Counted from the stretch's first letter, positions 2,536-38,500 are shown. The stretch is 64,000 nucleotides of DNA from Laetmonice hystrix (GCA_965235115.1 OZ249438.1:33108001-33172000); one strand, 5' to 3'. Numbers and translations: made by a program. The notes: generated by a model not told the origin, from the sequence alone.

Positions 2536-5500
2536 CTGAAAACACCAAACATACTCCATGGTCACACCCAACCCTCATTACAAACACACTGTTTAACGAA
2601 TTCAAATTAAATTACTTTCATTTCTAACCATACTCCTGTCAATATCAAGTCATACATTCATCTCTAACCACACCCCTGTCAATATCAAGTCACACATTCA
2701 TCCCTAACCACACCCCTGTCAATATCAAGTCATAATCTTGAATTACATTCATCCCTAACCACACTCCTGTCAATATCAAGTCATACATTCATCTGTAACC
2801 ACACTCCTGTCAATATCAAGTCATAATCTTGAATTACATTCATCCCTAACCACACTCCTGTCAATATCAAGTCACATATTCATCTCTAACCACACCCCTG
2901 TCAATATCAAGTCATACATTCATCTCTAACCACACCCCTGTCAATATCAAGTCATACATTCATCTCTAACCACACTCCTGTCAATATCAAGTCATACATT
3001 CATCCCTAACCACACTCCTGCCAATATCAAGTCATACATTCATCCCTAACCACACTCCTGTCAATATCAAGTCATACATTCATCCCTAACCACACTCCTG
3101 TCAATATCAAGTCACACATTCATCCCTAACCACACTCCTGTCAATATCAAGTCATAATCTTGAATTACATTCATCTCTAACCACACCCCTGTCAATATCA
3201 AGTCATACATTCATCCCTAACCACACCCCTGTCAATATCAAGTCATACATTCATCCCTAACCACACTCCTGTCAATATCAAGTCATAATCTTCCCAATCT
3301 GAATGAGGCTAACAGACCTGCAAAGCATCTACATGAAATGTTCATATGATTAATCATTAATTCTCACGAATTGTAATTCAAAGATAATGGTCTACTGCCC
3401 AGCCATGGGTAGCAATTGTACCCAGATCCCTGCCTCCTCAACTTACCTCATCCTTACACTGGAAGAGATACTCGCCACCCGATCCCAACTTCAGACGGAA
3501 AACGTTGGGGCGTTTGGTGTAATCAGAAGCAATGGCGCACGAGACGCCACTCAGCTCGATCGGCAGTTCGTGACGGAAGTAGCTGCCAGGGTCCTGTTAC
3601 AAAGAGGAAAAGAACGAACTCTCTTATCAATGTCAATCTCTACAACAGGTGTGGGGCGACATAATCTACACTTTGTGCCAAGTTTATGGCCGCTATGTAT
3701 GCTGCCTGTGAAACTCCATCTAACATCTTTCTCACAATGAAAGTTCAAGGGACAGGTCTTCCTTACTGTAGCTTTTTACAATCTTTTAGCCTCAAGTACA
3801 TACGAGAACCCATGCAATACCAACTCCAGTAAAAATCAATAAAATATGTACTCACACTCTTGGCATGCTTGGCGTCCTTATAGAAGGCAAGTGCCTTGGC
3901 ATCGAGCATACAGAACAACTTCTCCCAGGACCTGTTGACAGAAAGTAACATCAGTGGATGTTTGTGTCTGTGTGTGTATGAAGGTTAATACAATCAGTAA
4001 CAGCTAGGGTCATACCAACATGGTCACCTTGAATGATGTAGGAAACTTGAGGTAACTCAAGACACTGACCCAAACCTTCTCATATAAGGGTTGCCCCAAA
4101 CACTGGTCTTGCATTGACTTCCCATCTCAAACATCAGTTTTCTACATCATCTACTTTACGTTTGGTTTCATATATCTTCACCAGAGCTTCTGTCTGTAGT
4201 GCTCATTCTGTAGGTATACAGCTGTGAGTGGAGCAAGGCCTCAAACACTCACCTATTACTGGCTTTCTTAGTAGTGCTCTCCCATTCGTGTTTCCGTACC
4301 AACATTCCCTCAAATCGTTCTTCTGCCTCCTGGCCGGACACTGAAACAACCCATAGCAAACTATCAGTCTGTGCGAACCGCTCAGTGTGGTGCACCGCCA
4401 TAAGGAGGTACTGAACTGCTAACCTTAAATCTTTGCTGGATGGTTAGGAGAGCTTAGTATGTTATGGACATTTACTTATATATAGAGGGGATGCGATGCA
4501 GAGCGGGACTGGGATGTGAGCAGGATCCCTGCTGTCAATCTCTGAGGTCATTATTTTGACACTTATTTATCTCCTCAAAATCAGCAACCCTACATCTTGT
4601 GTTAACACACAATATCTGAAAACAACAGGTACAAAACGACAAAAAACAGGATACCATCATTTCATGTTGCTGATTTTGTAAGAGAGACTTTCTACGATTA
4701 TTTTTTTTCAAAGGCGACGGTGGCGTTAACGCTGGACTGAGGGCAAGCTACTTCATTGCAAAGTACGCAGACCCCAGCTGTGCTGCATACATGCCAATAA
4801 TATCTTACAAACATTCTAATATAAAGGCCAAATGGGATGTTAAATAAGGGCAAAATTTGACTCTGTTAGTATGAGTCTTAATGGTCATCCTTAAACACAC
4901 ACGAACGACTTGAAAATGTTTTCATAGGCACTTGATAGATATCCTCATTAACGAAAACTGATGGGGGGAAAAGAGGAGTATAGCTTTTTATCTTATCTAT
5001 TTGGATAGAAAGTTGTTTGGATTGTCAAGTTTGGTCATCCTTATAGGATCGAGGAAACCAGGAAGTTTGGTCGACCAACTACTTGACTGAGCAATAGGCC
5101 AGCTGCAAGAGGCAACCACGGAATGAAGCCGTGAACCACTGACTGCCTTCACCACGTGCCATGATAATCCCACCTGTTCATCTAATAAGGTCACTGAGAC
5201 ACGGACTCTGGGGTTACAGTTCTCGCAACAAACAGAACAGGCAGGGGAAAACCATGGACAACCAACTCTTAGGTCACTCACTTATATCAAAGTAAATATA
5301 AATGCTCAGGACAAATCATTTTGGTATATTAGTACAAAACTCCTTTAGAACTATCAACATTTGGCTAAAAACATTATCCACTAGAGACAATATAAAAATG
5401 GCAAATAGATAAAACGCTATTTCTAACAATGAAAGCATCATACATGTATATAAAATACTATAAATAAGTCATGTATTTATAGCAATGTACGTCCTACATA

Positions 5501-20500: not shown

Positions 20501-23500
20501 TGTCCTGCCACCACTCTCTCGCCATAATCATGCATCTTGGAATAATCATCAGCGTATGCGTCAATCTCTTCCTTGATCTGCTGGTGCTGGTTGAGGAGAC
20601 GCTCAGCCTCGGCTAGATCGGTGGGGATGTCCTCGGAGGCTACAGTGGTCTGAGTCTTGGTCAGCCACTTCTGGAAGTGGTCAAGGTTCTGCAGGAAGTG
20701 CTGCAGTTCGCTCGCCTCACCGAGACGCTCATCACGCCGCTTCAGCTGTCAACACACAGAGGCACATTAATAGCTGACATCTCAGGCACACTAGGTTAAC
20801 AAACGTCTCAGTATACAGCTGAATTCAGATCGAGACCTAGGGCCTCTAGACATTACATTACAATGTCTACAAAGGGAAAAACAAGCACTACTGACCATGG
20901 TCTTAAGTTCCATCCAGAGTTCAGTCATCTCGTTGATCTTGACCTGGATGGCCTCAGCCTCCTCTGGCTTCTGGTCCTTCAGACGGTCAGCCTCCTCTTG
21001 CAGCGAGTCCAGCTGTTACAGACAACATGTGTTATAAGGCAGAAACACTAACCTGGAAGTCCACTCGACACAAGATTTCTAACCTCTGCCTATCAATTTC
21101 ACATTATGTTGTATTAACTTAACAGTTCTACATCGCTAGGTTATCTTTTGAGTTCCATAAAGTAGGCAGTATGGAATTGTGCCACACTAATTCAAGATTA
21201 GTCTGAACATTAATGATATTGAAATAACAAGAGCCCCCATGATGGAAGGATTGTGCTGACCTTGGCCTGGATAGCAGCAAGGTCACGCTCTAGACCTGAC
21301 AGGCGGCGCTGTAGGGTCATCACACCAGCCAGGTCATTGCCCAGTTCATCAGTCGACTCGATCAACTTCGCCTTCTCCCTAATCCATGTCTGGAGGAATC
21401 ATGCCACAGCTTGTAAGAAAACTCTCATGATGCCAAGAAACAATCACTACCAAGGCACCACTCGGTATCAGTGAGCTGATACTGAGTCGGTCGATGATGA
21501 GAAAAGCATTAACTCATCCTTTACAGGACAATATCTGAGAAACAACTGTAAAAACAGCCATGTTGTCAGACCATTTAACTTTAGTTCCAATATAAAACAA
21601 CTACCCGGTATGCTCTCGATAACCACATACACCAGACAAACATCCCATTATATGTCACAGTTGTAACAAGTGATGCAACTCACAATGGTTTCCTGGCACT
21701 CAATGTGCCATGTGGTGACACCATGCGCCAAGTTGAGGGAGTCCCGCTTACGGTCAGCGAGTTCACGTAGCTCAGCCCAGCGCTGGTTGAGCTGGTTCTG
21801 TCGAGCGATCACCTCGTCCGAGTTGGGATGTTCATTGTGGAGCAGCTGCCTAGCCAGCTGGTTGACAACAGCCACCTTAGATGCGTTAGAGTTCATCTCC
21901 TGGTCGAATGTTGCGAAGCGCGCCTTGAGGATCTCAACATCCTCAATGTCATCACTTGGCTCCATGGAGGCAAGCAGCTTCTCCTGTGAAGGAACAGATA
22001 AAGAGTTAAGCCATAGGTGAGGAAAATATTTTTCTCTGCTTCATGGGACATTCCTATTACTTAGTCAGTTCCAAAAGTCTCTCACTGTCAGCACGTTACC
22101 ACATGTTAGAGCAAACTTACACCGACTTTTCATTTTTTCCTGTCACCCCTATTTAGAATTTTACCCATTATTACGTAGATTATGATTAACTAGAAGGTTA
22201 AGAAGATTTTACACAATTTACCTTTTCTGCGATCCACTGTTCAACGCCATCAGCCTCATTGAAGAGTTTGTACAGGGCAAGAGCATCAAGCAGGCGCTGT
22301 TTGCGCAGCTTAGCAAGCTCGAGCAGCTCCTGATAGCGGCGGTCAATGGACCCCAGACGACCAAGCACCTCTGGAGACTCGCGATCCTAGAAAACATGCA
22401 AGCAATACAGTAACGTAGGCCTTGTCCCTGTGAAAACTAATGACTACTTGATTTCAGTGGCAAACACAGGATTTATATAAAAAGAAAAAGAGACAGACAA
22501 CTTTTTAACGTCTTATTGCACTTATACTTTACACTGGAAAGTTTAAAAAAATATTTTGAAGTTAAAAAAAATTGTAATGCCTGACACTTACCTGTTCCCC
22601 AAGGCTTCCTGCCTGCTCGTGGAGTGCCTGGATAACACTGCTGTAGTTCTGCAGTTCATCGCTCACCTCCTATTCACAGAGAGAAGACAAACTTAGTCCC
22701 AGCTGCCGAGCCGACAGGACCCTCAAGGTCTTTATCACACTTAACATAACCAGCATCGTACAGATAGTTCTATACTCCCAACACCACCTTAAAACAATGC
22801 ATCCACTGGGTTTGTCTACACTTCTCTACCATAGCTCTACTCATCGTCTACAGACAAAACCTTCACCATTACCTCAATCATCTAAGTAAAACTCTTTAAA
22901 CTCACATCACTATTAGTGTCTCTTAAATACCAGTACATTATTATGCAAACATGTCTAACTTACATTTAAATTGATTACGGTCGAATGTTAACGCTATCTT
23001 ATGTCATTAAGCCAAAATCACGTCCATCTAAGATTGTAACTGGTTTGAGTTGATTTCAGAAGCAAAGCCACTGATTTCTAGATGTACAGATCGCCTTGGC
23101 TGTAGCCTACAGAGTGCAGCCTCGTGACACACAGTGCTTGGTTCCGAGGCAAACAGTGCTTTCATAACTACATGAGCAAATGGTCATTCACATTTGTATT
23201 TCCCTCACTAAGAGTATCGTTAAAGCAGCTTTATAAGAGAGATTCTGTTCATGCTTCGTGCAACAAACCAGGTGGTTTCCTCCATCTCCCGGAAATGATG
23301 AAACAAAAAATGTTGTCTGGGATTTTGTTCTCCTTTGGGCGAGGGGTCTGGGTAGGTATAGTAATTGATAATCATACGTTGTCTATTACAAGTACAAAAA
23401 CCATGGGAAGGAAACCATCTGACGGAGGTGAAACGTGGGTAGAACTGCTGTATGGGTGAACCCACATACAGTAACTGTACACGTGACTGTGCTTCTATTG

Positions 23501-26500
23501 ACACAAGTCTTGTCTGCCTCATGCCACGTCTACCTAGGACAGCCCGGCCACATCTCTCTGTGTGTAACTCCACAGATCCCACACACCCAATCAGGACTTT
23601 CTGACTCAGTCCACCGTCACACTCAGCCGGGCCGTCCTATACCCAACTACATAGATGGCAATACCCTTTCATGTTGAGTCATCAATCCATACACCCTGAG
23701 ACAGAATCCAGTTTATTCACGCTCGCTCACCTCACAGTACAAAGTCAGAACCCTCTGCAGTATACAGGCATGTCTCCACGCCCCTTATGACGGATCATTT
23801 ATTCCACATAAAAGGAGATTACCCCTTGATCTAAGGTGACATGCCCCATACCCTGCTCTGTTCAGATTAACGTGCAATAATTCTGTGTGGCAATTTACCT
23901 AGTCTTCACTAACCCCTTCTATATTCATTTATTTGAATCTTAAGGTGGCTACAAAGATTTCGGTAAAGTACCTTGGAGAACAATGAGGGACATTTCCAAT
24001 GTAGCCTTGCATAAATTTATTATGTCGTCAATCCTCGAAGTCTTTTTTTCATTTTTGTCATAATTTTGATTTGTTACAGACAGATATTATTTTTAAAACC
24101 CTGAAAAAAATAACGTTGAATTTTTTTCCCCCTTTTCTCATCGAGAAGAGGGTTTTGATCTTCCCTACCCCATCTGACTCCATGTTCTCGCCGAGCCTGC
24201 TAAACCTCAGACATGCCACATCCAAGCTTCAGGCATGCACACTAATTTAAAATTTTGCTGGACCAAGACTTGCAGTATTTGCTACTCAAAGCTTCTCACC
24301 TGGAGGTAAACTACTGTAATCTGTATCTGGGTTTGTGGATCTGCCCCCCCCCCCCCCCCACGACTTTAAATTCTAACCTTCTCCACAAGACTTTTGTATT
24401 AGTAGCACAAAAATATACTTAACAGAACAACAGAAGAATTCATACAGAAATGCAAAGTACGACTTAAAATGACAGGTACCAACTCAAACCAGACTAAAGA
24501 ATTGAAGTTTGTTGTAAAGACAAGGTAAAGGTAAGCGACAATGACAATAGAGAGGAGGCATGGCAGGAGGGGGTTAGAAAGAGTTTTGAGTTAACAGGTT
24601 GTTTTTAAAAACTGAGAAGAAATAACGAACAAGAAATGGTCAACGCATGCACTCACAGGTTGCTGTGCATTGAGGTCATCTTCAATTCTCTGAAATCACA
24701 CACGGACAACACAAGTTGTTAGGACGCTAGCTAGCCACCCACTCTCTCTCTCCCTCTCTCTTCTCCTGTCTAAATTAGGAGCTATTCCCACTCACAGACT
24801 GCAAGGCTTCACCAAATACCAGCGGTTTGGCATAAAATTTCAGGAACTTGATAAAGACCTATTTATTTCTTCATCAAAAGACGTCCATGAGTCTCCTTAC
24901 GTTTCCATGTAGTCATTTATAAAGGTACTGTTTGACTGAACATTTTTCTCAGTATCTCACTTCAGATGCCAGTAGGTGGCATCATATTTTTTTGCGGATT
25001 AACAATGCCAGTGAATAACGAGTTTGGCGCCGGTTCTGGTGAGCCTGCTGACTGTCCAATGGAGAAGTTGGCCTTGTTACAGTTTATCTGCACTGAGAGA
25101 GAGCCACCTGAGATTTGGAGCCTACTGGTACATGCGTCCTATAAGACATTATACATTATATACAGGTACCCTGGCAGCCTGGGAGGAGTCAGACATGCGC
25201 TCACCTACGCAGTTCTCACTGTCTGACCACTCACATAGTCATCCCTACACACCTCTGTCTCTTCCAAATATCCTTCCCTATATTCTTGGCCTAGAATCTC
25301 CCCGATACTGTGGGCCTGGCCTTGTAGTCTAAGACAATTCCTTAGTCTGACCTCAACATCAGCCTGAGGCCGTGGCTGAACTATTTCTATTCACATCAGC
25401 CTCACGTCAGACTGAAAGCAGGCTGAGGGATTGTCTTAGAATATGTCCCGGCCTTGTGTTAGGCATGCACCTGTTAAACCACCTCTCTGTTAAAAGGTTC
25501 ATGAAGCAAGCACACCGCTGCCCACCCCTCCTTCTCTCACTTATCTTCCTACCACCTTCCCTCTTCATATTAATGTACATTTGTAGACAAACACCCCCCA
25601 CTGGACAAATTTGGTTTGAAAGATTACATCAGGCAGTTGCCAGGGTCTTCCGACAATTTTTCTTTTTTCTTCTCCTTTCTTTTTTTTTAACTTAAATTAA
25701 TTGAAAGTAAAATATTACATATTGCAGTTATTTCTGTCAAGTTAGTTTTTGGTTTACAAAAGAAGCAAGAGAAATTTGTTACCTAAGTATAAAACACATA
25801 CCGTACACATAAACTACTGACAATTACATGTAAAGTGGGGAAACTACAACTGGGAGAGAAAGACCTCACACTGTCACAAAAAGCTCTTAGATCACGATGC
25901 ACCAAAACGTCCACAGTTAAAATGTGTCCCGAGAATTGCCCGTAATTACATTGTGAACAGGGGAAGACAGCTAGATCAGTTACTTACAAGTACTACTTTA
26001 CCTTTATAAAGGTTTCTTGACGGGCTAAACAGACTTTCTAACAGGGTCTGTTATCTAGCATAGTGAAGAGGACAAATAAAGTGAGGTGAAACGTTTCCAT
26101 ACGGACTGGTCACTGTCGGTAGAATATCTATGGTTTTTTTAAATTGCTGATACCTGATGTTGACCATGGGTGTTTAAGTTTTCTTTGTGAATATCCCCTT
26201 TCTTGTTCTCTGTCAGCAGCCTGTATTTCTACTACTTTCTTTCTACTATTGTTTTCAAACGTGACCTACCATAAAAAAACTAGATGTTCTCTCCTCAGCT
26301 TACAAATTTACTGTCCCAAATCTGTCCCAGAAGAGACAAGACACAACTGGTACAACCCTTGGCATTGCACATATATCTTTCTTTGGTGCAGCCTTTATAT
26401 TATTCCACCCTAACGGACACTCGAACACAGTAAAAATACTGTGTATACTGTGGCCTTTGTCTGGCATTATACAGGCATGCAGGGAATAACGGCAGCAACA

Positions 26501-29500
26501 AATACTGGTGTTATTTCAACAACTGGGCACTACTCACCTTATGTTTCTTCAGCAGTGACTGAACGGAAGCCTCATCTCGACCAACATCTTCGCTGGAAAC
26601 CAGGCGAAGTGTGTCGAGCATCCATGTGTCAACATCATCCGCATCCGCAAAGAACTACAGAAAACATCCATTTCGTTTATTACATGCTTGCATCTTACAG
26701 TGCAGCCAACTGCAAAACCCCTACCATATAAAGTTTTACACTCAGCACATTTCGCCTTTACTTAATCTTCTATTAACTTTTCCATCATACAAGTGCTATA
26801 CTTCCAATAACCCAGAAAGCAACTAGAATTCCACCACAGTCCTTTTATTAATTTGACTGTCAAATGCTGTCAAAGTTTAATGCCTGCTAAGCCAGAACCT
26901 TGCAGTGTGATTACGTTCACCTACCTGGTAGAAGTCGACAGCCTCCAGGAGGCGCTTCTTGCGGAATGCAGCGAGGTCGATGAGGTTGTCCCACTGACCG
27001 TTGATCTCGGTGATGCGCTGCTGTATCTTCTCGGCCCCAAGGTTGCCTGCTTTGATCAGATCCTCTCCGACCTGCATTACCGACTGCAGGTGCGAGTGGC
27101 GAGCCTGCATCTCATCCTCATTAGCCTGCAACCACATATTCCAAATGACCTTTGTGACTTGTGTCAAGATACTAGTATTATATTCTATTGGAGTGAAAGA
27201 CAATATCAGCACTTTTTGAGATCGACTCGATGACTGAAGCTACCCTTCAATGTTACAGTAGGAACACTATTTATTTACTATCTATTTTTGTTTGATTTGC
27301 TGTAACGAGAATCTCTTTAAATGTTACAGCTCTATTTCAACTGGAAGGGTTCAAAACAAATGGTAGTTATGTTACAACTGACTGCACTGAAAGCTAACAG
27401 CACGGGGACTCAGGCAGAGAGAAATAAAGTTGTTTTTTAATTGGGGAAGCATGTTTCTGATACCTCAATAAGCGAGTCAAAGGTGCACAGTTCCAATTCT
27501 ACTCTATTCTTGCTTATTTATCAATTGACTACAAGCAGCTTTGGGAAACACTTAGGTGACCCACCACTAGTAATAGCAACAGGAAACAGAGGATTTCCCC
27601 AGCCGAAAAGTATTTTGCAGAGGACGGTAGCAGTTCTTTTACTACACTGGGCATGATATGCCTGTTATGCCAGCACATGGCTATTTGAGAACCAAGAACT
27701 GACGTCACCGCCCCCTGCAGCAGGTCATCGTTAAATGACCCCCGATTCCTCGGCTGGGAAAACTCCTGCACAACAAGAACAAGAAGAAAAGGAAAAATCT
27801 TCTCTACAATTTTGTACGAACTTGGGCAAAAAATATTTAACTTTCAGGTTCAATACACAATAATGAATGATTTCTTTCAAATGAACTAACTAGGGGCTGT
27901 CTATCACAAGTCTCTGCTTCAGTACTGGGGTCGAGGGAATACAGATTTACTGCACTCAATTCACAAATTTAATTCCACCTACAAATCTTTCAACATATTA
28001 TTTCATAAATCTACATTTTGAATCCAGTTCATTGGTTGAGGAACGGCAGAATACTTAGAGGATGTGGATGTTGTATTATGGAGAGTTGTCTTTTAAACTG
28101 ATCTTATCTCGGCCACTTTACCAGGTCATCAAGTAAATCAGACACAGTATCAATGAGATAGTCATGAAGACCAAGCTCGTTGCCTATCTCATCCTCCTCG
28201 GCTGTCTCAAGTTCTATACAGTATCTATGCAGAATAATATTTTACATATTCAACTCAGAAAGCACTTATTACTACAGTTAACGTTGTAATTACGCATGCA
28301 TGCAGACTTCTAACTGAAAACACCAAATGAAACAAGAAAACTACAGCTAATAAATTAAGATTTAGAGATACAACCTAAGAATATAACAATTAACATTTCT
28401 AAGTCTAGTTTTGACAAAACGCAAGAAATTCGCTGGACTTTTGTGGGCTGGGATATAACACTGGTTCTGAGGTAAAGGTGTGTGCCCCATCACCACCCAC
28501 GACCCGTGTTGAGCAAAGCTACAGGGGTCCATGCTGACCCCTTGCTACCCTGAGACTAACCTTGTGTTTGTTGAGGAGAAGGTGTACTGATGTGAGGTCG
28601 TGTCCAAGATCAGGTGATGACATGAGTTGTTCCTTCTCGCGGATCCATCCCTCCTCATCAGCCATGTCCCAGTAGAACTGCCACAGTCTACGCGACTCTT
28701 CCAGCTTCGAGCGGCGGTCGGAGGCCAGTTGCTGGAGCTCCTCGTATGCGGCCTCCAGGTGTGACATACGGTCCTTCACAACCTGTGGGTCGCACGGCTT
28801 GTAGCCTTGGCAACCACATACAACTTTTGTTAAATCTCATTGGGAGAGAATGGGCAAGTCCCTACAGCAACACTGAGACCAAATCACACATCCCACACAA
28901 CAGCCTACTGGGCTCATGTCAACATCACCTCGACATCTTCCTTCTTAGTACCAAACAGCCATCACCTCTCTACACATCTTGTCTGTACTTCAATTAAGAG
29001 ACAGAACCGAAAGCCTGATGTTGACTAGAGCCCCACCACACACCAATACTCAGTGTTGCCATCGGAACAATAAAAGTAGGATATCACGACAATGACTTAA
29101 TTTAATTCAACCGACAGGGTGGCACAATCTTACATCTATATCACACATGAAGAAGTGGTACATGACTCCGTATGCACCACATCTTCATCATTAGTATGTC
29201 TTCCTTTTCTTCCTTTTTCTTAGAGAGATTGTTCAACCTGCACACGTTATCACAAACCTAAGTTGCACCACCTTCTCGTGGACGAGGGTTAGGATGACAG
29301 ACCACTGGGTTGGGGTGGCGGGGGGGGGGGGGAGCTTCTGATGTAATACGGGAGAGGAATGGTTTTCTATGTCTATGACATACATGTCATTGCCTTTTAC
29401 TTACACCCCGATTCTAACAACTAGTATCTAAAGCTAGCTCAAACTTATTACCAGTGGGTGAGGGGGGAGCGGGCATAGGGGATTGAGGACCTGCTGCTGG

Positions 29501-35500: not shown

Positions 35501-38500
35501 TTTATTCCTGGAATACCAGACATTCACATACTACAACTAACACCTCGCCGCCTGTCTGGCTGTAGACTGGTCACAGAGGTCATTCCCGACCTCCGTACCT
35601 AGTAACAGCTCACTTTCAGGGAGGCCAACATTTGCCTGCCACCGTCCAGCTTATTTGATTCATTTCAATGCTGCCACCACAGGAGGAGATGTTGTCTGTG
35701 TCTACAGTATGCGTCAAGGCCGAGCCCAGTCTGCCGGTGTGTGGGGGCCTATCTCCCTACAGCCTCCCCAGATGGCGCTAATTCACTGCTTTCCGACACA
35801 CGTCTTGGAAGTGTGGGGGGGGGGGGACACCCACACGGATGAACGAAACAAGCCTGTCAGCCCTTCACAGTGCCAGGAGCCATGGATGCCTGACCTGGTG
35901 TGTCCAAAAAGTAGGACAACTGCGATTGGCCAGTGGTTGGAAGGGGTAGTTTTAACTGCCAGGACTAAAACCTCGCCCCCCCCCCCCCCCCCCCTTCAGT
36001 CATAATTAAATTTTTCGTTTTCATTTCTTGCGTCCGGAATGGTGGGGAAACTGACCCACCCCAAGACAGTCTAGATCTTCCCAGGCTGCCGCTCAACCCC
36101 TCATAACATATTCCTAAAAGTTAGTTGCCCTGTCACTGGGCTACATGTTCGACTTCTTCGGAATCTCTGGGCGCTAAAGTAAGTATCCGAAGTTTCTATT
36201 TTCGCAAGTATCAGGCTCCACTATATAGACGCTCCGCCTCTGCAAGAACTCTGGCCTTAATTAATGTTTGGCCGTACTGCCTATGTGCCAAACATGTCTC
36301 ACCATATTTTGTTTTATTACAGGTTTGCTATATTTTTCTGTGCCCAGACTGTTAATCCAGCTGCACTAACCCACCCCCACTACATGACCTAAATTCCTAT
36401 TGCCATGGCAATATGATCCACGGCATCCTCATCTACATAATGCCTGCAGCATATGAAAGGTTGAGATCAGAAGATCTCCATATGATGATAATTGAGGGTA
36501 GGCCGCTAGGCGCCTTTTTTCTCTCTCTCCGTTTTCAACCATGTCTATTGTATCCTAATGAGTCTGGCCAAGGCGCGGTGCTGGCACCAGGCCAGGCAGC
36601 ATCTTGATGTACCGGCGGCTCGGCTCATCACCAACATCTCAACCTCCTCACCGGAGAGCAGGGCAAACTGCCGGGCAAACTGCGTGGCGTCCACGCCAGG
36701 TGGCAGCAGGGTATCGATTCTTTTCTCGGAAAACTAACCTAAAATTGTGTACCCTCTTTGCTATTTTCTGTCACATAAGTATGAGAAAATTTCTGATGAT
36801 AAACCAGAGGGAGCGACCAGCTGCTGATTCGAGGAGTCCGTCACTTGGGACCTGGCCAGGTGGACTCCGCCTACCTGTAGCTGGTTACCTGTCGGCTCCC
36901 ATCATGGCAGGAGGAGGGGTACCGAGACCAGATGTTGGGGCGGGGAGATAAACAACGAGTGTGTACAACACCAGACACACACATCATACCAAGGCCAGGC
37001 TTCAGACATCGGGGACTTTCCTTTTTGCCTTTTCACAGAACGCGAGATCCTCTAATACCAATATATGAGGCATTTCTTAAATCGCTGTCAGGCCGCATCC
37101 TGATTTTGAATGACATGTTTATTTATAACCATGCATTGAGACTGCTGGGTACATTCCATCCCACAGCCCACAGCACCCTAGTTTTCTCATTACCCCGTCA
37201 ACAGCGTCTTTCAAACGTTCTTTCTCCCTTTACTTAGACTTTCCCGTTAACCTACACCTGCGTGAAACTAAACTTTTCTACAGTCGGTGAACTCAAGACA
37301 TTTGATATGATCCATGTAAGCCAGAGATAAGGGACCTCAGGGGTTGTTTGGGAGAGCCACCTTGGCAAAGTGGGTCAGTGGGTTGCGGCCTTCAGCGTAC
37401 AGCAAATGTCCATTACAGTGGTTGTACATGATATGTGTATCACACTGATGGCCGCCACCTACATGACCTCAGGTGACGGGTGACCTAGGGGTCGTACTGC
37501 TTCCCCCGGCATTACTACAGTACAGCAGCTTCACATATTAAACAAACACTAGAAAGAGGGCAACTTTCGGGTACCTAAATCCGGATTTATCCTTACAGGA
37601 ATGCCAAGCCGTACACCTGTCCTAAACTTTGAACAATTAGCGTAGCCATTGGCACTGCGGATTTGGTTACTTTATATTTTGAGATATTTTCCCCCAGATA
37701 GAGCCAGTTCTAAGCATGAAAACTCCAAACGTGCCGTGTTAGCAGCCACAGCCCAGACCCAGCCACTACCTCAGACAAATGTAATAACTTGTGCTGATGG
37801 CAGCCTGCCGTTCTGACTATTGGGTTTTCCCACTCCGGGGGTGGAGCGCACAGCTCAGCCAACGGCCCCGGACTGTGAGTGTCAGCAGCTGCTGCTGCTG
37901 CAGCAGCAGACAGGTTATATTCAATTTATTATCTCATCTTCCTTATACAACCACCAATCTCATTTAATTGGCAGACTCTCTGATCATCTCCAGCAAAGTT
38001 TAGACTTTTCCTTTAGGAGATTAGTTTTAAGAAATAAATGATCCTATGAAATGAAGCATATCGTTCCCTGTTGGAGCCGATGCATACCCTCAAGGCATAA
38101 TGTGTTTCCATCTCGTCTCGTACAAGGATTGCCTCCAGAGATAACCGTGTTAGTGTGTGAATCCGATCAATGCACGACTTTTCAAGTTTATCAAGTTATC
38201 CTCGCAGTCAAGATGAGGAGATTGTAGCCATCACGTCAAAAAGGTCACCAAAACTTTGATCATCTAAACTACAGGAACTGTGAATAATGAGCTTGCTAAA
38301 AGCAACCAAAGCAGGAAGTGTTTATGATAACCTTTTCACAGGTCCAAGAGTTCAAATTTCGTTGAAAGGCAAGGAGTCAGAATGTTAATGATTCAGACCA
38401 GAAGGATGCAGAAGTTGTTTGGAATGTTTTCCTTCTCCCCAAGATAAGAAAGTATTTGTGTAGAGAACTCAAGTTGAGAGATTTGAGCTGTGACCTCGGA

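Follow-up and report, generated by a model that had tools for sequence, protein, structure and literature searches.

An 11-residue mini-exon inside helix B of beta-spectrin repeat 5 in Laetmonice hystrix and its counterpart in Lingula anatina

Short additions to the spectrin rod are known from a few systems. Vertebrate alpha-II spectrin (SPTAN1) has small in-frame alternative inserts, for example one of 20 residues in repeat 10, and the repeats that nucleate the spectrin dimer (beta 1-2 and alpha 20-21) carry constitutive insertions of 8 residues; inserts in the rod are normally situated in loops. Neural microexons, which measure 3-27 nucleotides (nt), depend on SRRM3/4 and the eMIC domain, and Rbfox usually enhances the inclusion of an exon from a downstream UGCAUG and usually represses it from an upstream one. 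We analysed a 64,000-nt stretch of DNA from Laetmonice hystrix (GCA_965235115.1 OZ249438.1:33108001-33172000), referred to as the window and used for all positions below unless another sequence is named. Its minus strand holds a beta-spectrin gene, and we describe here a 33-nt mini-exon of this gene whose 11 residues are inserted into helix B of spectrin repeat 5.

This mini-exon resembles the SPTAN1 inserts, where short cassette exons add few residues inside the rod and keep the frame; those inserts differ in belonging to an alpha chain, to vertebrates and to other repeats and positions, and are likened here without any sequence relationship. As with the dimer-nucleation insertions, a spectrin repeat grows beyond 106 residues through an internal insertion, but the latter are constitutive, lie in other repeats and have no separate mini-exon. 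The neural microexon programme offers another parallel (in both cases a long intron of a neuronal or cytoskeletal gene holds a conserved exon that is very short and keeps the frame), although our exon and its counterpart in Lingula anatina, at 33-36 nt, exceed the 27-nt limit and their conserved element is a UGCAUG at the donor; in the window sequence, the pyrimidine tract and the AG of the mini-exon have no UGC motif between them. Rbfox (Fox-1/ASD-1) cassette exons share the short frame-preserving exon, the cytoskeletal gene and a downstream UGCAUG conserved across phyla; here, in contrast, the motif begins at +5, overlapping the donor hexamer and much nearer than the typical enhancer position, and the dependence is putative. 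A literature search for spectrin microexons or helix-B inserts returned nothing relevant. The type of element is ordinary (a conserved in-frame mini-exon with an Rbfox-type motif), while its location is new to the searched literature. The first-pass annotation of the window had likewise known of no description, which holds for the papers searched; a public Lingula gene model already contains the exon that we regard as orthologous.

The 33-nt exon in spliced RNA

The exons of repeat 5 and the elements flanking the mini-exon are arranged as follows.

26538..26654, minus strand: exon 13, 117 nt, 39 residues (FFADADD...SLLKKHK), phase 0-0; helix A, AB loop and first part of helix B of spectrin repeat 5
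24690..24715, minus strand: 3' splice region of the mini-exon, a G/T-rich tract GTGTTGTCCGTGTGTGATTTCAG with a weak pyrimidine tract, its AG used by the transcript joint 26538->24689
24657..24689, minus strand: mini-exon, 33 nt, 11 residues, phase 0-0, acceptor TTTCAG and donor GTGAGT, present in the spliced contig
24645..24656, minus strand: donor GTGAGT fused to TGCATG(C), a 12-mer (GTGAGTGCATGC) identical at the Lingula mini-exon; candidate Rbfox (UGCAUG) element at +5..+10
22592..22669, minus strand: exon 14, 78 nt (EVSDEL...SLGEQ), phase 0-0, remainder of helix B, present in the spliced contig together with the mini-exon
22222..22386, minus strand: exon 15, 165 nt (DRESPEV...WIAEK), BC loop and helix C of repeat 5 and start of repeat 6, joint 22591->22385

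Only four public runs (X1-X4), all from one sample and one study, hold the gene, and we examined their assembled contigs (Logan) over 22300-26700. X1-X3 cover exons and introns alike and are thus DNA, whereas X4 has zero depth in the introns. A single X4 contig of 6505 nt, with a mean depth of about 158, carries in succession the pieces 22300-22385, 22591-22668, 24656-24689 and 26538-26656; their coordinates in the contig record are contiguous (4072-4149, 4150-4183, 4184-4302), with no letters between the pieces. The three joints have CT..AC ends on the plus strand, that is GT..AG on the gene strand, and none of them occurs in X1-X3. Since X1-X3 cover the introns without these joints, a retrocopy is excluded, and X4, being without intron depth, represents spliced RNA. 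The spliced order is exon 13, 33-nt exon, exon 14, exon 15 (joints 26538->24689 and 24656/7->22668/9). Where X4 differs from the reference in exons 13 and 14 the codons read as synonymous, and no run differs inside the mini-exon. The 33-nt segment is bordered by AG and GT and joined to its neighbours in spliced RNA, which is not the case for two shorter segments of the same intron discussed below; it is a genuine frame-preserving exon that adds 11 residues inside helix B of beta-spectrin repeat 5. The first-pass annotation had called it well supported, and the joints to exons 13 and 14 bear this out.

Without the insert, exons 13, 14 and 15 encode a canonical repeat of 106 residues (repeat 5 by position) in which exons 13 and 14 meet midway along helix B. 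Exon 13 ends in ...SLLKKHK, followed by its donor GTGAGT, and its peptide is 97% identical to residues 747-785 of the Lingula protein P0238. The TGCATG at 24651..24646 overlaps the last base of the mini-exon donor hexamer, as had been noticed from the window, and this arrangement is conserved in Lingula. Two simple-sequence tracts lie nearby. Just upstream of the mini-exon acceptor is a GA-rich repeat (24735-24765) that many unrelated contigs match and that lacks 2 bases at 24742 in one haplotype; in the intron downstream of the mini-exon there is a run of about 16 G (24344-24359, minus strand), where the DNA contigs of X1 and X2 break and where X1 and X3 differ in length by 4 bases.

The first-pass annotation had placed two further open frames after the 33-nt one, as a chain of three mini- or micro-exons spelling a second helix B:

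23731..23754, minus strand: 24-nt AG..GT open frame RVLTLYCE, donor GTGAGC; rejected, not in the observed transcript
22873..22881, minus strand: 9-nt AG..GT open frame MIE, borders TAG and GTAATG; rejected as a chance frame

Coordinates and letters of all three AG..GT frames in phase 0-0 proved correct, but the chain does not hold, as both the contig and the Lingula protein run from the mini-exon straight into exon 14. The same co-inclusion, in the window species and in Lingula, contradicts the proposal that the mini-exon might be a mutually exclusive alternative to exon 14. Among the junctions predicted for such a chain, 26538->24689 is present in the contig, while 24657->23754, 23731->22881 and 22873->22669 are absent and 24657 joins 22669. 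The 24-nt frame was rejected on its zero transcript depth, the lack of letters between the mini-exon and exon 14 pieces, its chance-level similarity and the lack of a Lingula counterpart; the 9-nt frame is absent from the transcript contig, and the intron holds 17 frames of that size, in keeping with the earlier caution that it could be chance. Downstream of the Lingula mini-exon we found no counterpart of the 24-nt or the 9-nt segment. Lack of both junctions and conservation in relatives had been named as grounds for dismissing the 33- and 24-nt segments: the former has both (contig and Lingula exon), the latter neither.

The chance background in this 3868-nt intron is considerable. It contains 276 stop-free AG..GT frames of 6-60 nt in phase 0-0; those of 9, 24 and 33 nt number 17, 20 and 17, respectively. 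When RVLTLYCE is aligned to the corresponding stretch of exon 14, its BLOSUM62 score is 2, which 180 of 2341 open intronic 8-mers equal or exceed; against repeat 12 it scores -2, and 432 of the 2341 are as good. For MIE, similarity is uninformative. A crude and unreliable splice-site matrix ranks the sites of the unused 24-nt frame above those of the real 33-nt exon, so that site strength alone does not discriminate here. Peptide resemblance together with nominal splice sites is therefore insufficient, having yielded two false micro-exons beside a true one. Directly upstream of the 24-nt frame (within 23755-23784), haplotypes X1 and X3 carry several small deletions clustered at 23762-23779 as well as a substitution at 23758, which suggests that this indel-rich stretch is unconstrained.

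The Lingula counterpart and the identity of the gene

We compared about 190 beta-spectrin orthologues spanning repeat 5, from molluscs, annelids, arthropods, amphioxus and fishes, with many transcript-derived fragments among them. Only one has an insert at the KKHK| junction: the 'spectrin beta chain-like' protein P0238 of the brachiopod Lingula anatina, which reads KKHK-EIMDEIERQRPT-DVTDELKNY, its 12 additional residues being encoded by a 36-nt mini-exon. Along this locus (L014, GCA_001039355.2 LFEI02000127.1) exons of 117 nt, 36 nt (the mini-exon) and 78 nt are separated by introns of 809 nt and 1675 nt, respectively, and exon 15 comes next. The Lingula gene therefore agrees with the window in the intron (after ...KKHK, between the 117-nt and 78-nt exons), in phase 0-0 and in the 12-mer GTGAGTGCATGC; it differs in the length of the mini-exon (36 nt and 12 residues versus 33 nt and 11 residues), in an extra TGCATG 29 nt upstream, and in belonging to a different phylum. 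The 12 nt that follow the mini-exon, comprising the donor and the UGCAUG motif (GUGAGUGCAUGC), are identical in the two species, and blastn detected no other alignable sequence between the window and the Lingula introns. The 12-mer occurs once in the 64-kb window, at the mini-exon donor, and the 11-mer GTGAGTGCATG once across all 19 fetched loci, at the Lingula mini-exon donor.

The encoded peptides are also alike. Aligned to the Lingula insert, the window peptide has a BLOSUM62 score of 24, the best among 1930 open intronic 11-mers, of which the next scores 16. Both inserts contain I, D, Q and P, plus D/E and L/I, in the pattern I-x-D-[DE]-[LI]-x-x-Q-x-P, and the codons of the conserved Q and P differ only synonymously (CAG/CAA and CCT/CCA). 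Judged by position, flanking string and peptide, the window's 33-nt exon is orthologous to the 36-nt exon of Lingula. An independent origin is unlikely because of the shared donor string, and on this comparison the simplest reading would be that the exon arose once, before annelids and brachiopods diverged, and was then lost several times.

Beyond Lingula the exon was not encountered. The 78-nt exon 14 is present in Lingula, Lottia, Helobdella and Ridgeia, and the same-position introns of Lottia, Helobdella, Ridgeia and Mytilus, only 262-385 nt long, contain no mini-exon. In an arachnid-like genome (L013) the intron position is conserved and the intron measures 3.4 kb, with neither a mini-exon nor a TGCATG. 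A representative-library search with the 175-residue exon gave 150 proteins, none with an insert at KKHK, multi-repeat proteins dominating the ranking, and the 10 candidates from a search with the 44-residue region around the Lingula insert included no further insert-bearing protein. One Mytilus beta-spectrin model (L019 28952-29245) ends exactly at KKHK because its contig ends 293 nt further on.

An insert of another kind is found in the same repeat of Branchiostoma lanceolatum, where an SPTBN1 isoform (P0310) has 17 additional residues, DQKLIHDLQDKIAETKG, at the next junction, where exons 14 and 15 meet in the BC loop (alignment A1, columns 187-204). Different phyla may thus repeatedly have acquired alternative inserts in repeat 5.

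As to the gene itself, the window's minus strand has open frames with a calponin-homology (CH) domain and many spectrin repeats (PF00307 and PF00435 matches). Residues 37-2104 of the Lingula beta-spectrin match the window in 26 colinear high-scoring segment pairs from 53.9 kb to 10.9 kb. The public Lingula beta-spectrin models are fragmented: that at L014 2001-35377 ends short of the PH domain, with a second 'gene' (35931-37377) beginning 550 bp further on. Identity among orthologues across the gene is 60-78%; the window protein is 69.5% identical to Lingula and 66-68% to annelids or molluscs, and is thus no closer to Lingula. A maximum-likelihood tree of 21 beta-spectrins places it in a clade (100/100) with the annelids Ridgeia and Helobdella and two transcript-derived proteins; the molluscs form the neighbouring clade, and Lingula falls outside the annelid and mollusc clades. 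A conventional beta-spectrin has two CH domains, 17 spectrin repeats and a PH domain. On its CH and spectrin-repeat matches, orthology to named beta-spectrins and nesting in the tree, the gene is classified by sequence as a conventional beta-spectrin of a lophotrochozoan, in the annelid clade of the gene tree. Searching the organism's own genome (627 Mb in 35 contigs) with the exon 13 and exon 16 peptides returned this locus and two distant ones of alpha or heavy-beta type. The organism is accordingly an invertebrate with one conventional beta-spectrin gene, as opposed to a vertebrate with several paralogues, and the same search provided no beta-spectrin paralogue for comparing introns, only the distant spectrin loci.

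Helix B and possible control by an Rbfox-type factor

The insert resembles the part of the helix into which it is placed. Its peptide has a score of 18 against the helix-B centre of repeat 12, again the best of 1930 open intronic 11-mers, and of 11 against the first 11 residues of exon 14, where 8 of the 1930 do as well; the Lingula insert scores 17 against the residues following it. We infer that the insert is a second, diverged copy of the 11-residue helix-B centre (x-I/V-x-D-D/E-L/I-x-x-Q/Y-x-P/S), which probably arose when part of exon 14, at its 5' end, was duplicated. Since the insert resembles the residues that follow, inclusion would yield two tandem copies of the helix-B centre.

For the fold, the first-pass annotation had considered an in-register extension of the helix. 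The 11-residue insert nearly keeps the hydrophobic a/d spacing, while the 12 residues of Lingula shift all downstream core residues by one, and a helix B longer by 16 Å could not be matched by unchanged helices A and C. We ran AlphaFold2 on repeats 4-6 of the Lingula orthologue, using an alignment of 56 rows. When the insert was present, the prediction showed helix B of repeat 5 as two helices (H138-154 and H164-182) separated by a loop (155-163) with a predicted local distance difference test (pLDDT) value below 50, the neighbouring helices having roughly 85-95; the control without the insert gave a continuous H138-170 at a pLDDT of about 90. The register shift and this low-confidence break make an extension in register doubtful, and with moderate confidence we favour a loop-out or hinge in helix B. 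The insert, which ends in proline, would then loop out and interrupt helix B, giving a local hinge or protrusion in repeat 5 while leaving the three-helix bundle at its length.

Several features bear on the control of inclusion. Both mini-exons are stop-free multiples of three (33 nt in the window, 36 nt in Lingula), and both have TGCATG at +5..+10 within the identical 12-mer; between exons 13 and 15 the Lingula introns contain two TGCATG in all, at -29 and +5 of the mini-exon. A TGCATG also lies at 22395-22400 (minus strand), 9-14 nt upstream of the exon 15 acceptor, and is not conserved in Lingula. The organism encodes an Rbfox-type RRM exon (...FGPILDVEIIFNERGSK, G000:C1:58066407-58066514; L018:1456-1575, minus), whose only PDB matches are Fox-1, RBM9 and ASD-1; no match to the Fox-1_C Pfam domain was obtained in the genome search. 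The weak, G/T-rich acceptor and the conserved UGCAUG at the donor suggest that an Rbfox-type factor regulates inclusion. In such a scheme the UGCAUG abutting the 5' splice site would make inclusion depend on that factor, and the exon would be a regulated cassette and not a constitutive one.

Competing explanations and biological meaning

The explanation that we consider best, and likely to be correct, is that the intron holds one genuine, ancient and conserved 33-nt mini-exon, orthologous to that of Lingula and co-included with exon 14, without a chain. Splicing of the 33-, 24- and 9-nt frames in series, to make a second helix B either as a 22-residue extension or as a replacement of exon 14, is by our estimate very improbable: all three frames do have AG/GT borders in phase 0-0, the nominal splice sites of the 24-nt frame are good and rare isoforms could escape the contigs, but the contig joins 24657 directly to 22669, in the Lingula protein exon 14 follows the insert directly with nothing corresponding to the two shorter segments, the similarity is at chance level among 276 comparable frames, and the haplotypes are polymorphic for indels just upstream of the 24-nt frame. 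Still harder to credit is that the 33-nt exon itself results from faulty assembly or mapping, or that it is a pseudo-exon occurring by chance in aberrant transcripts only. Although a single Logan contig represents it in the window species and the record does not give the library type, that contig has its mean depth of about 158 and exact GT..AG joints on both sides, and an orthologous exon with the same donor context is annotated independently in another phylum. The resemblance to Lingula might be convergent, the two mini-exons having been exonised independently from the intron in the annelid and brachiopod lineages. The absence of the exon from the same intron in Ridgeia, Helobdella, Lottia, Mytilus and the arachnid-like genome, the unequal lengths and the fact that any helix-B-like peptide will be somewhat similar speak for this; the same intron, phase and position relative to the 117-nt and 78-nt exons, an identical donor/UGCAUG string that recurs in neither the window nor the fetched loci, and a top-ranking peptide match with synonymous differences at the conserved residues speak against it, and we think convergence decidedly improbable.

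A constitutive exon, passed over in the exon numbering of the first-pass annotation, always included in its lineage and giving a repeat 5 of 117 residues with no regulated switch, is a possible though not a likely account. It fits the one X4 contig on this stretch, which has the inclusion form only, and the sole Lingula gene model, which includes the exon and bears no 'isoform' label; it fits less well with the conservation of the donor UGCAUG (with a second one upstream in Lingula), with the weak, G/T-rich acceptor and with the transcript-derived proteins of the nearest relatives (P0234, P0151 and P0190), which have no insert. We hold that the mini-exon is probably regulated. Certain points weigh against an ancient and regulated mini-exon that loops out of helix B. 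The library type of X4 is absent from its record, and its RNA nature is deduced from the intron-free coverage. The inclusion form alone was assembled, with no skipped form among the contigs of one sample from one RNA-like run; contigs can drop minor isoforms and show presence, not absence, so the missing skipped form is no evidence against its existence. Calling the exon alternative relies on the acceptor, the UGCAUG and the insert-free transcripts of relatives just mentioned. The position of the UGCAUG at +5..+10 is unusually near the 5' splice site, where Rbfox could hinder U1 as easily as help it, so that the direction of the effect is not predictable from the motif; the TGCATG density, 5 in 4.5 kb versus 0.45 per kb gene-wide, is marginal and was not used as evidence. 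Two other annelids and two molluscs are without the mini-exon, and an ancient origin requires several losses. The AlphaFold2 loop is of low confidence, and in the alignment the insert is carried by the query row alone.

A separately encoded segment of 11-12 residues in the middle of helix B, kept with a donor-fused UGCAUG in two phyla, is what sets this mini-exon apart. If its inclusion is regulated, it would offer a simple natural experiment on how a spectrin repeat changes in stiffness, unfolding or binding when one of its helices is broken, and would document the conservation of an Rbfox-type splicing element between phyla of lophotrochozoans. More tentatively, and rather unlikely on our present estimate, the exon may be an ancient cassette that predates the annelid/brachiopod split (Cambrian or older), derived from a partial duplication of exon 14 and gated by an Rbfox-type factor through the UGCAUG fused to its 5' splice site. 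Its inclusion would place a pseudo-copy of the helix-B centre, ending in proline, in repeat 5 and switch the repeat from a rigid three-helix bundle to one that has a hinge or docking loop. Were this true, it would amount to a splice-controlled tuning of the mechanics or the partners of the membrane skeleton in particular cell types.

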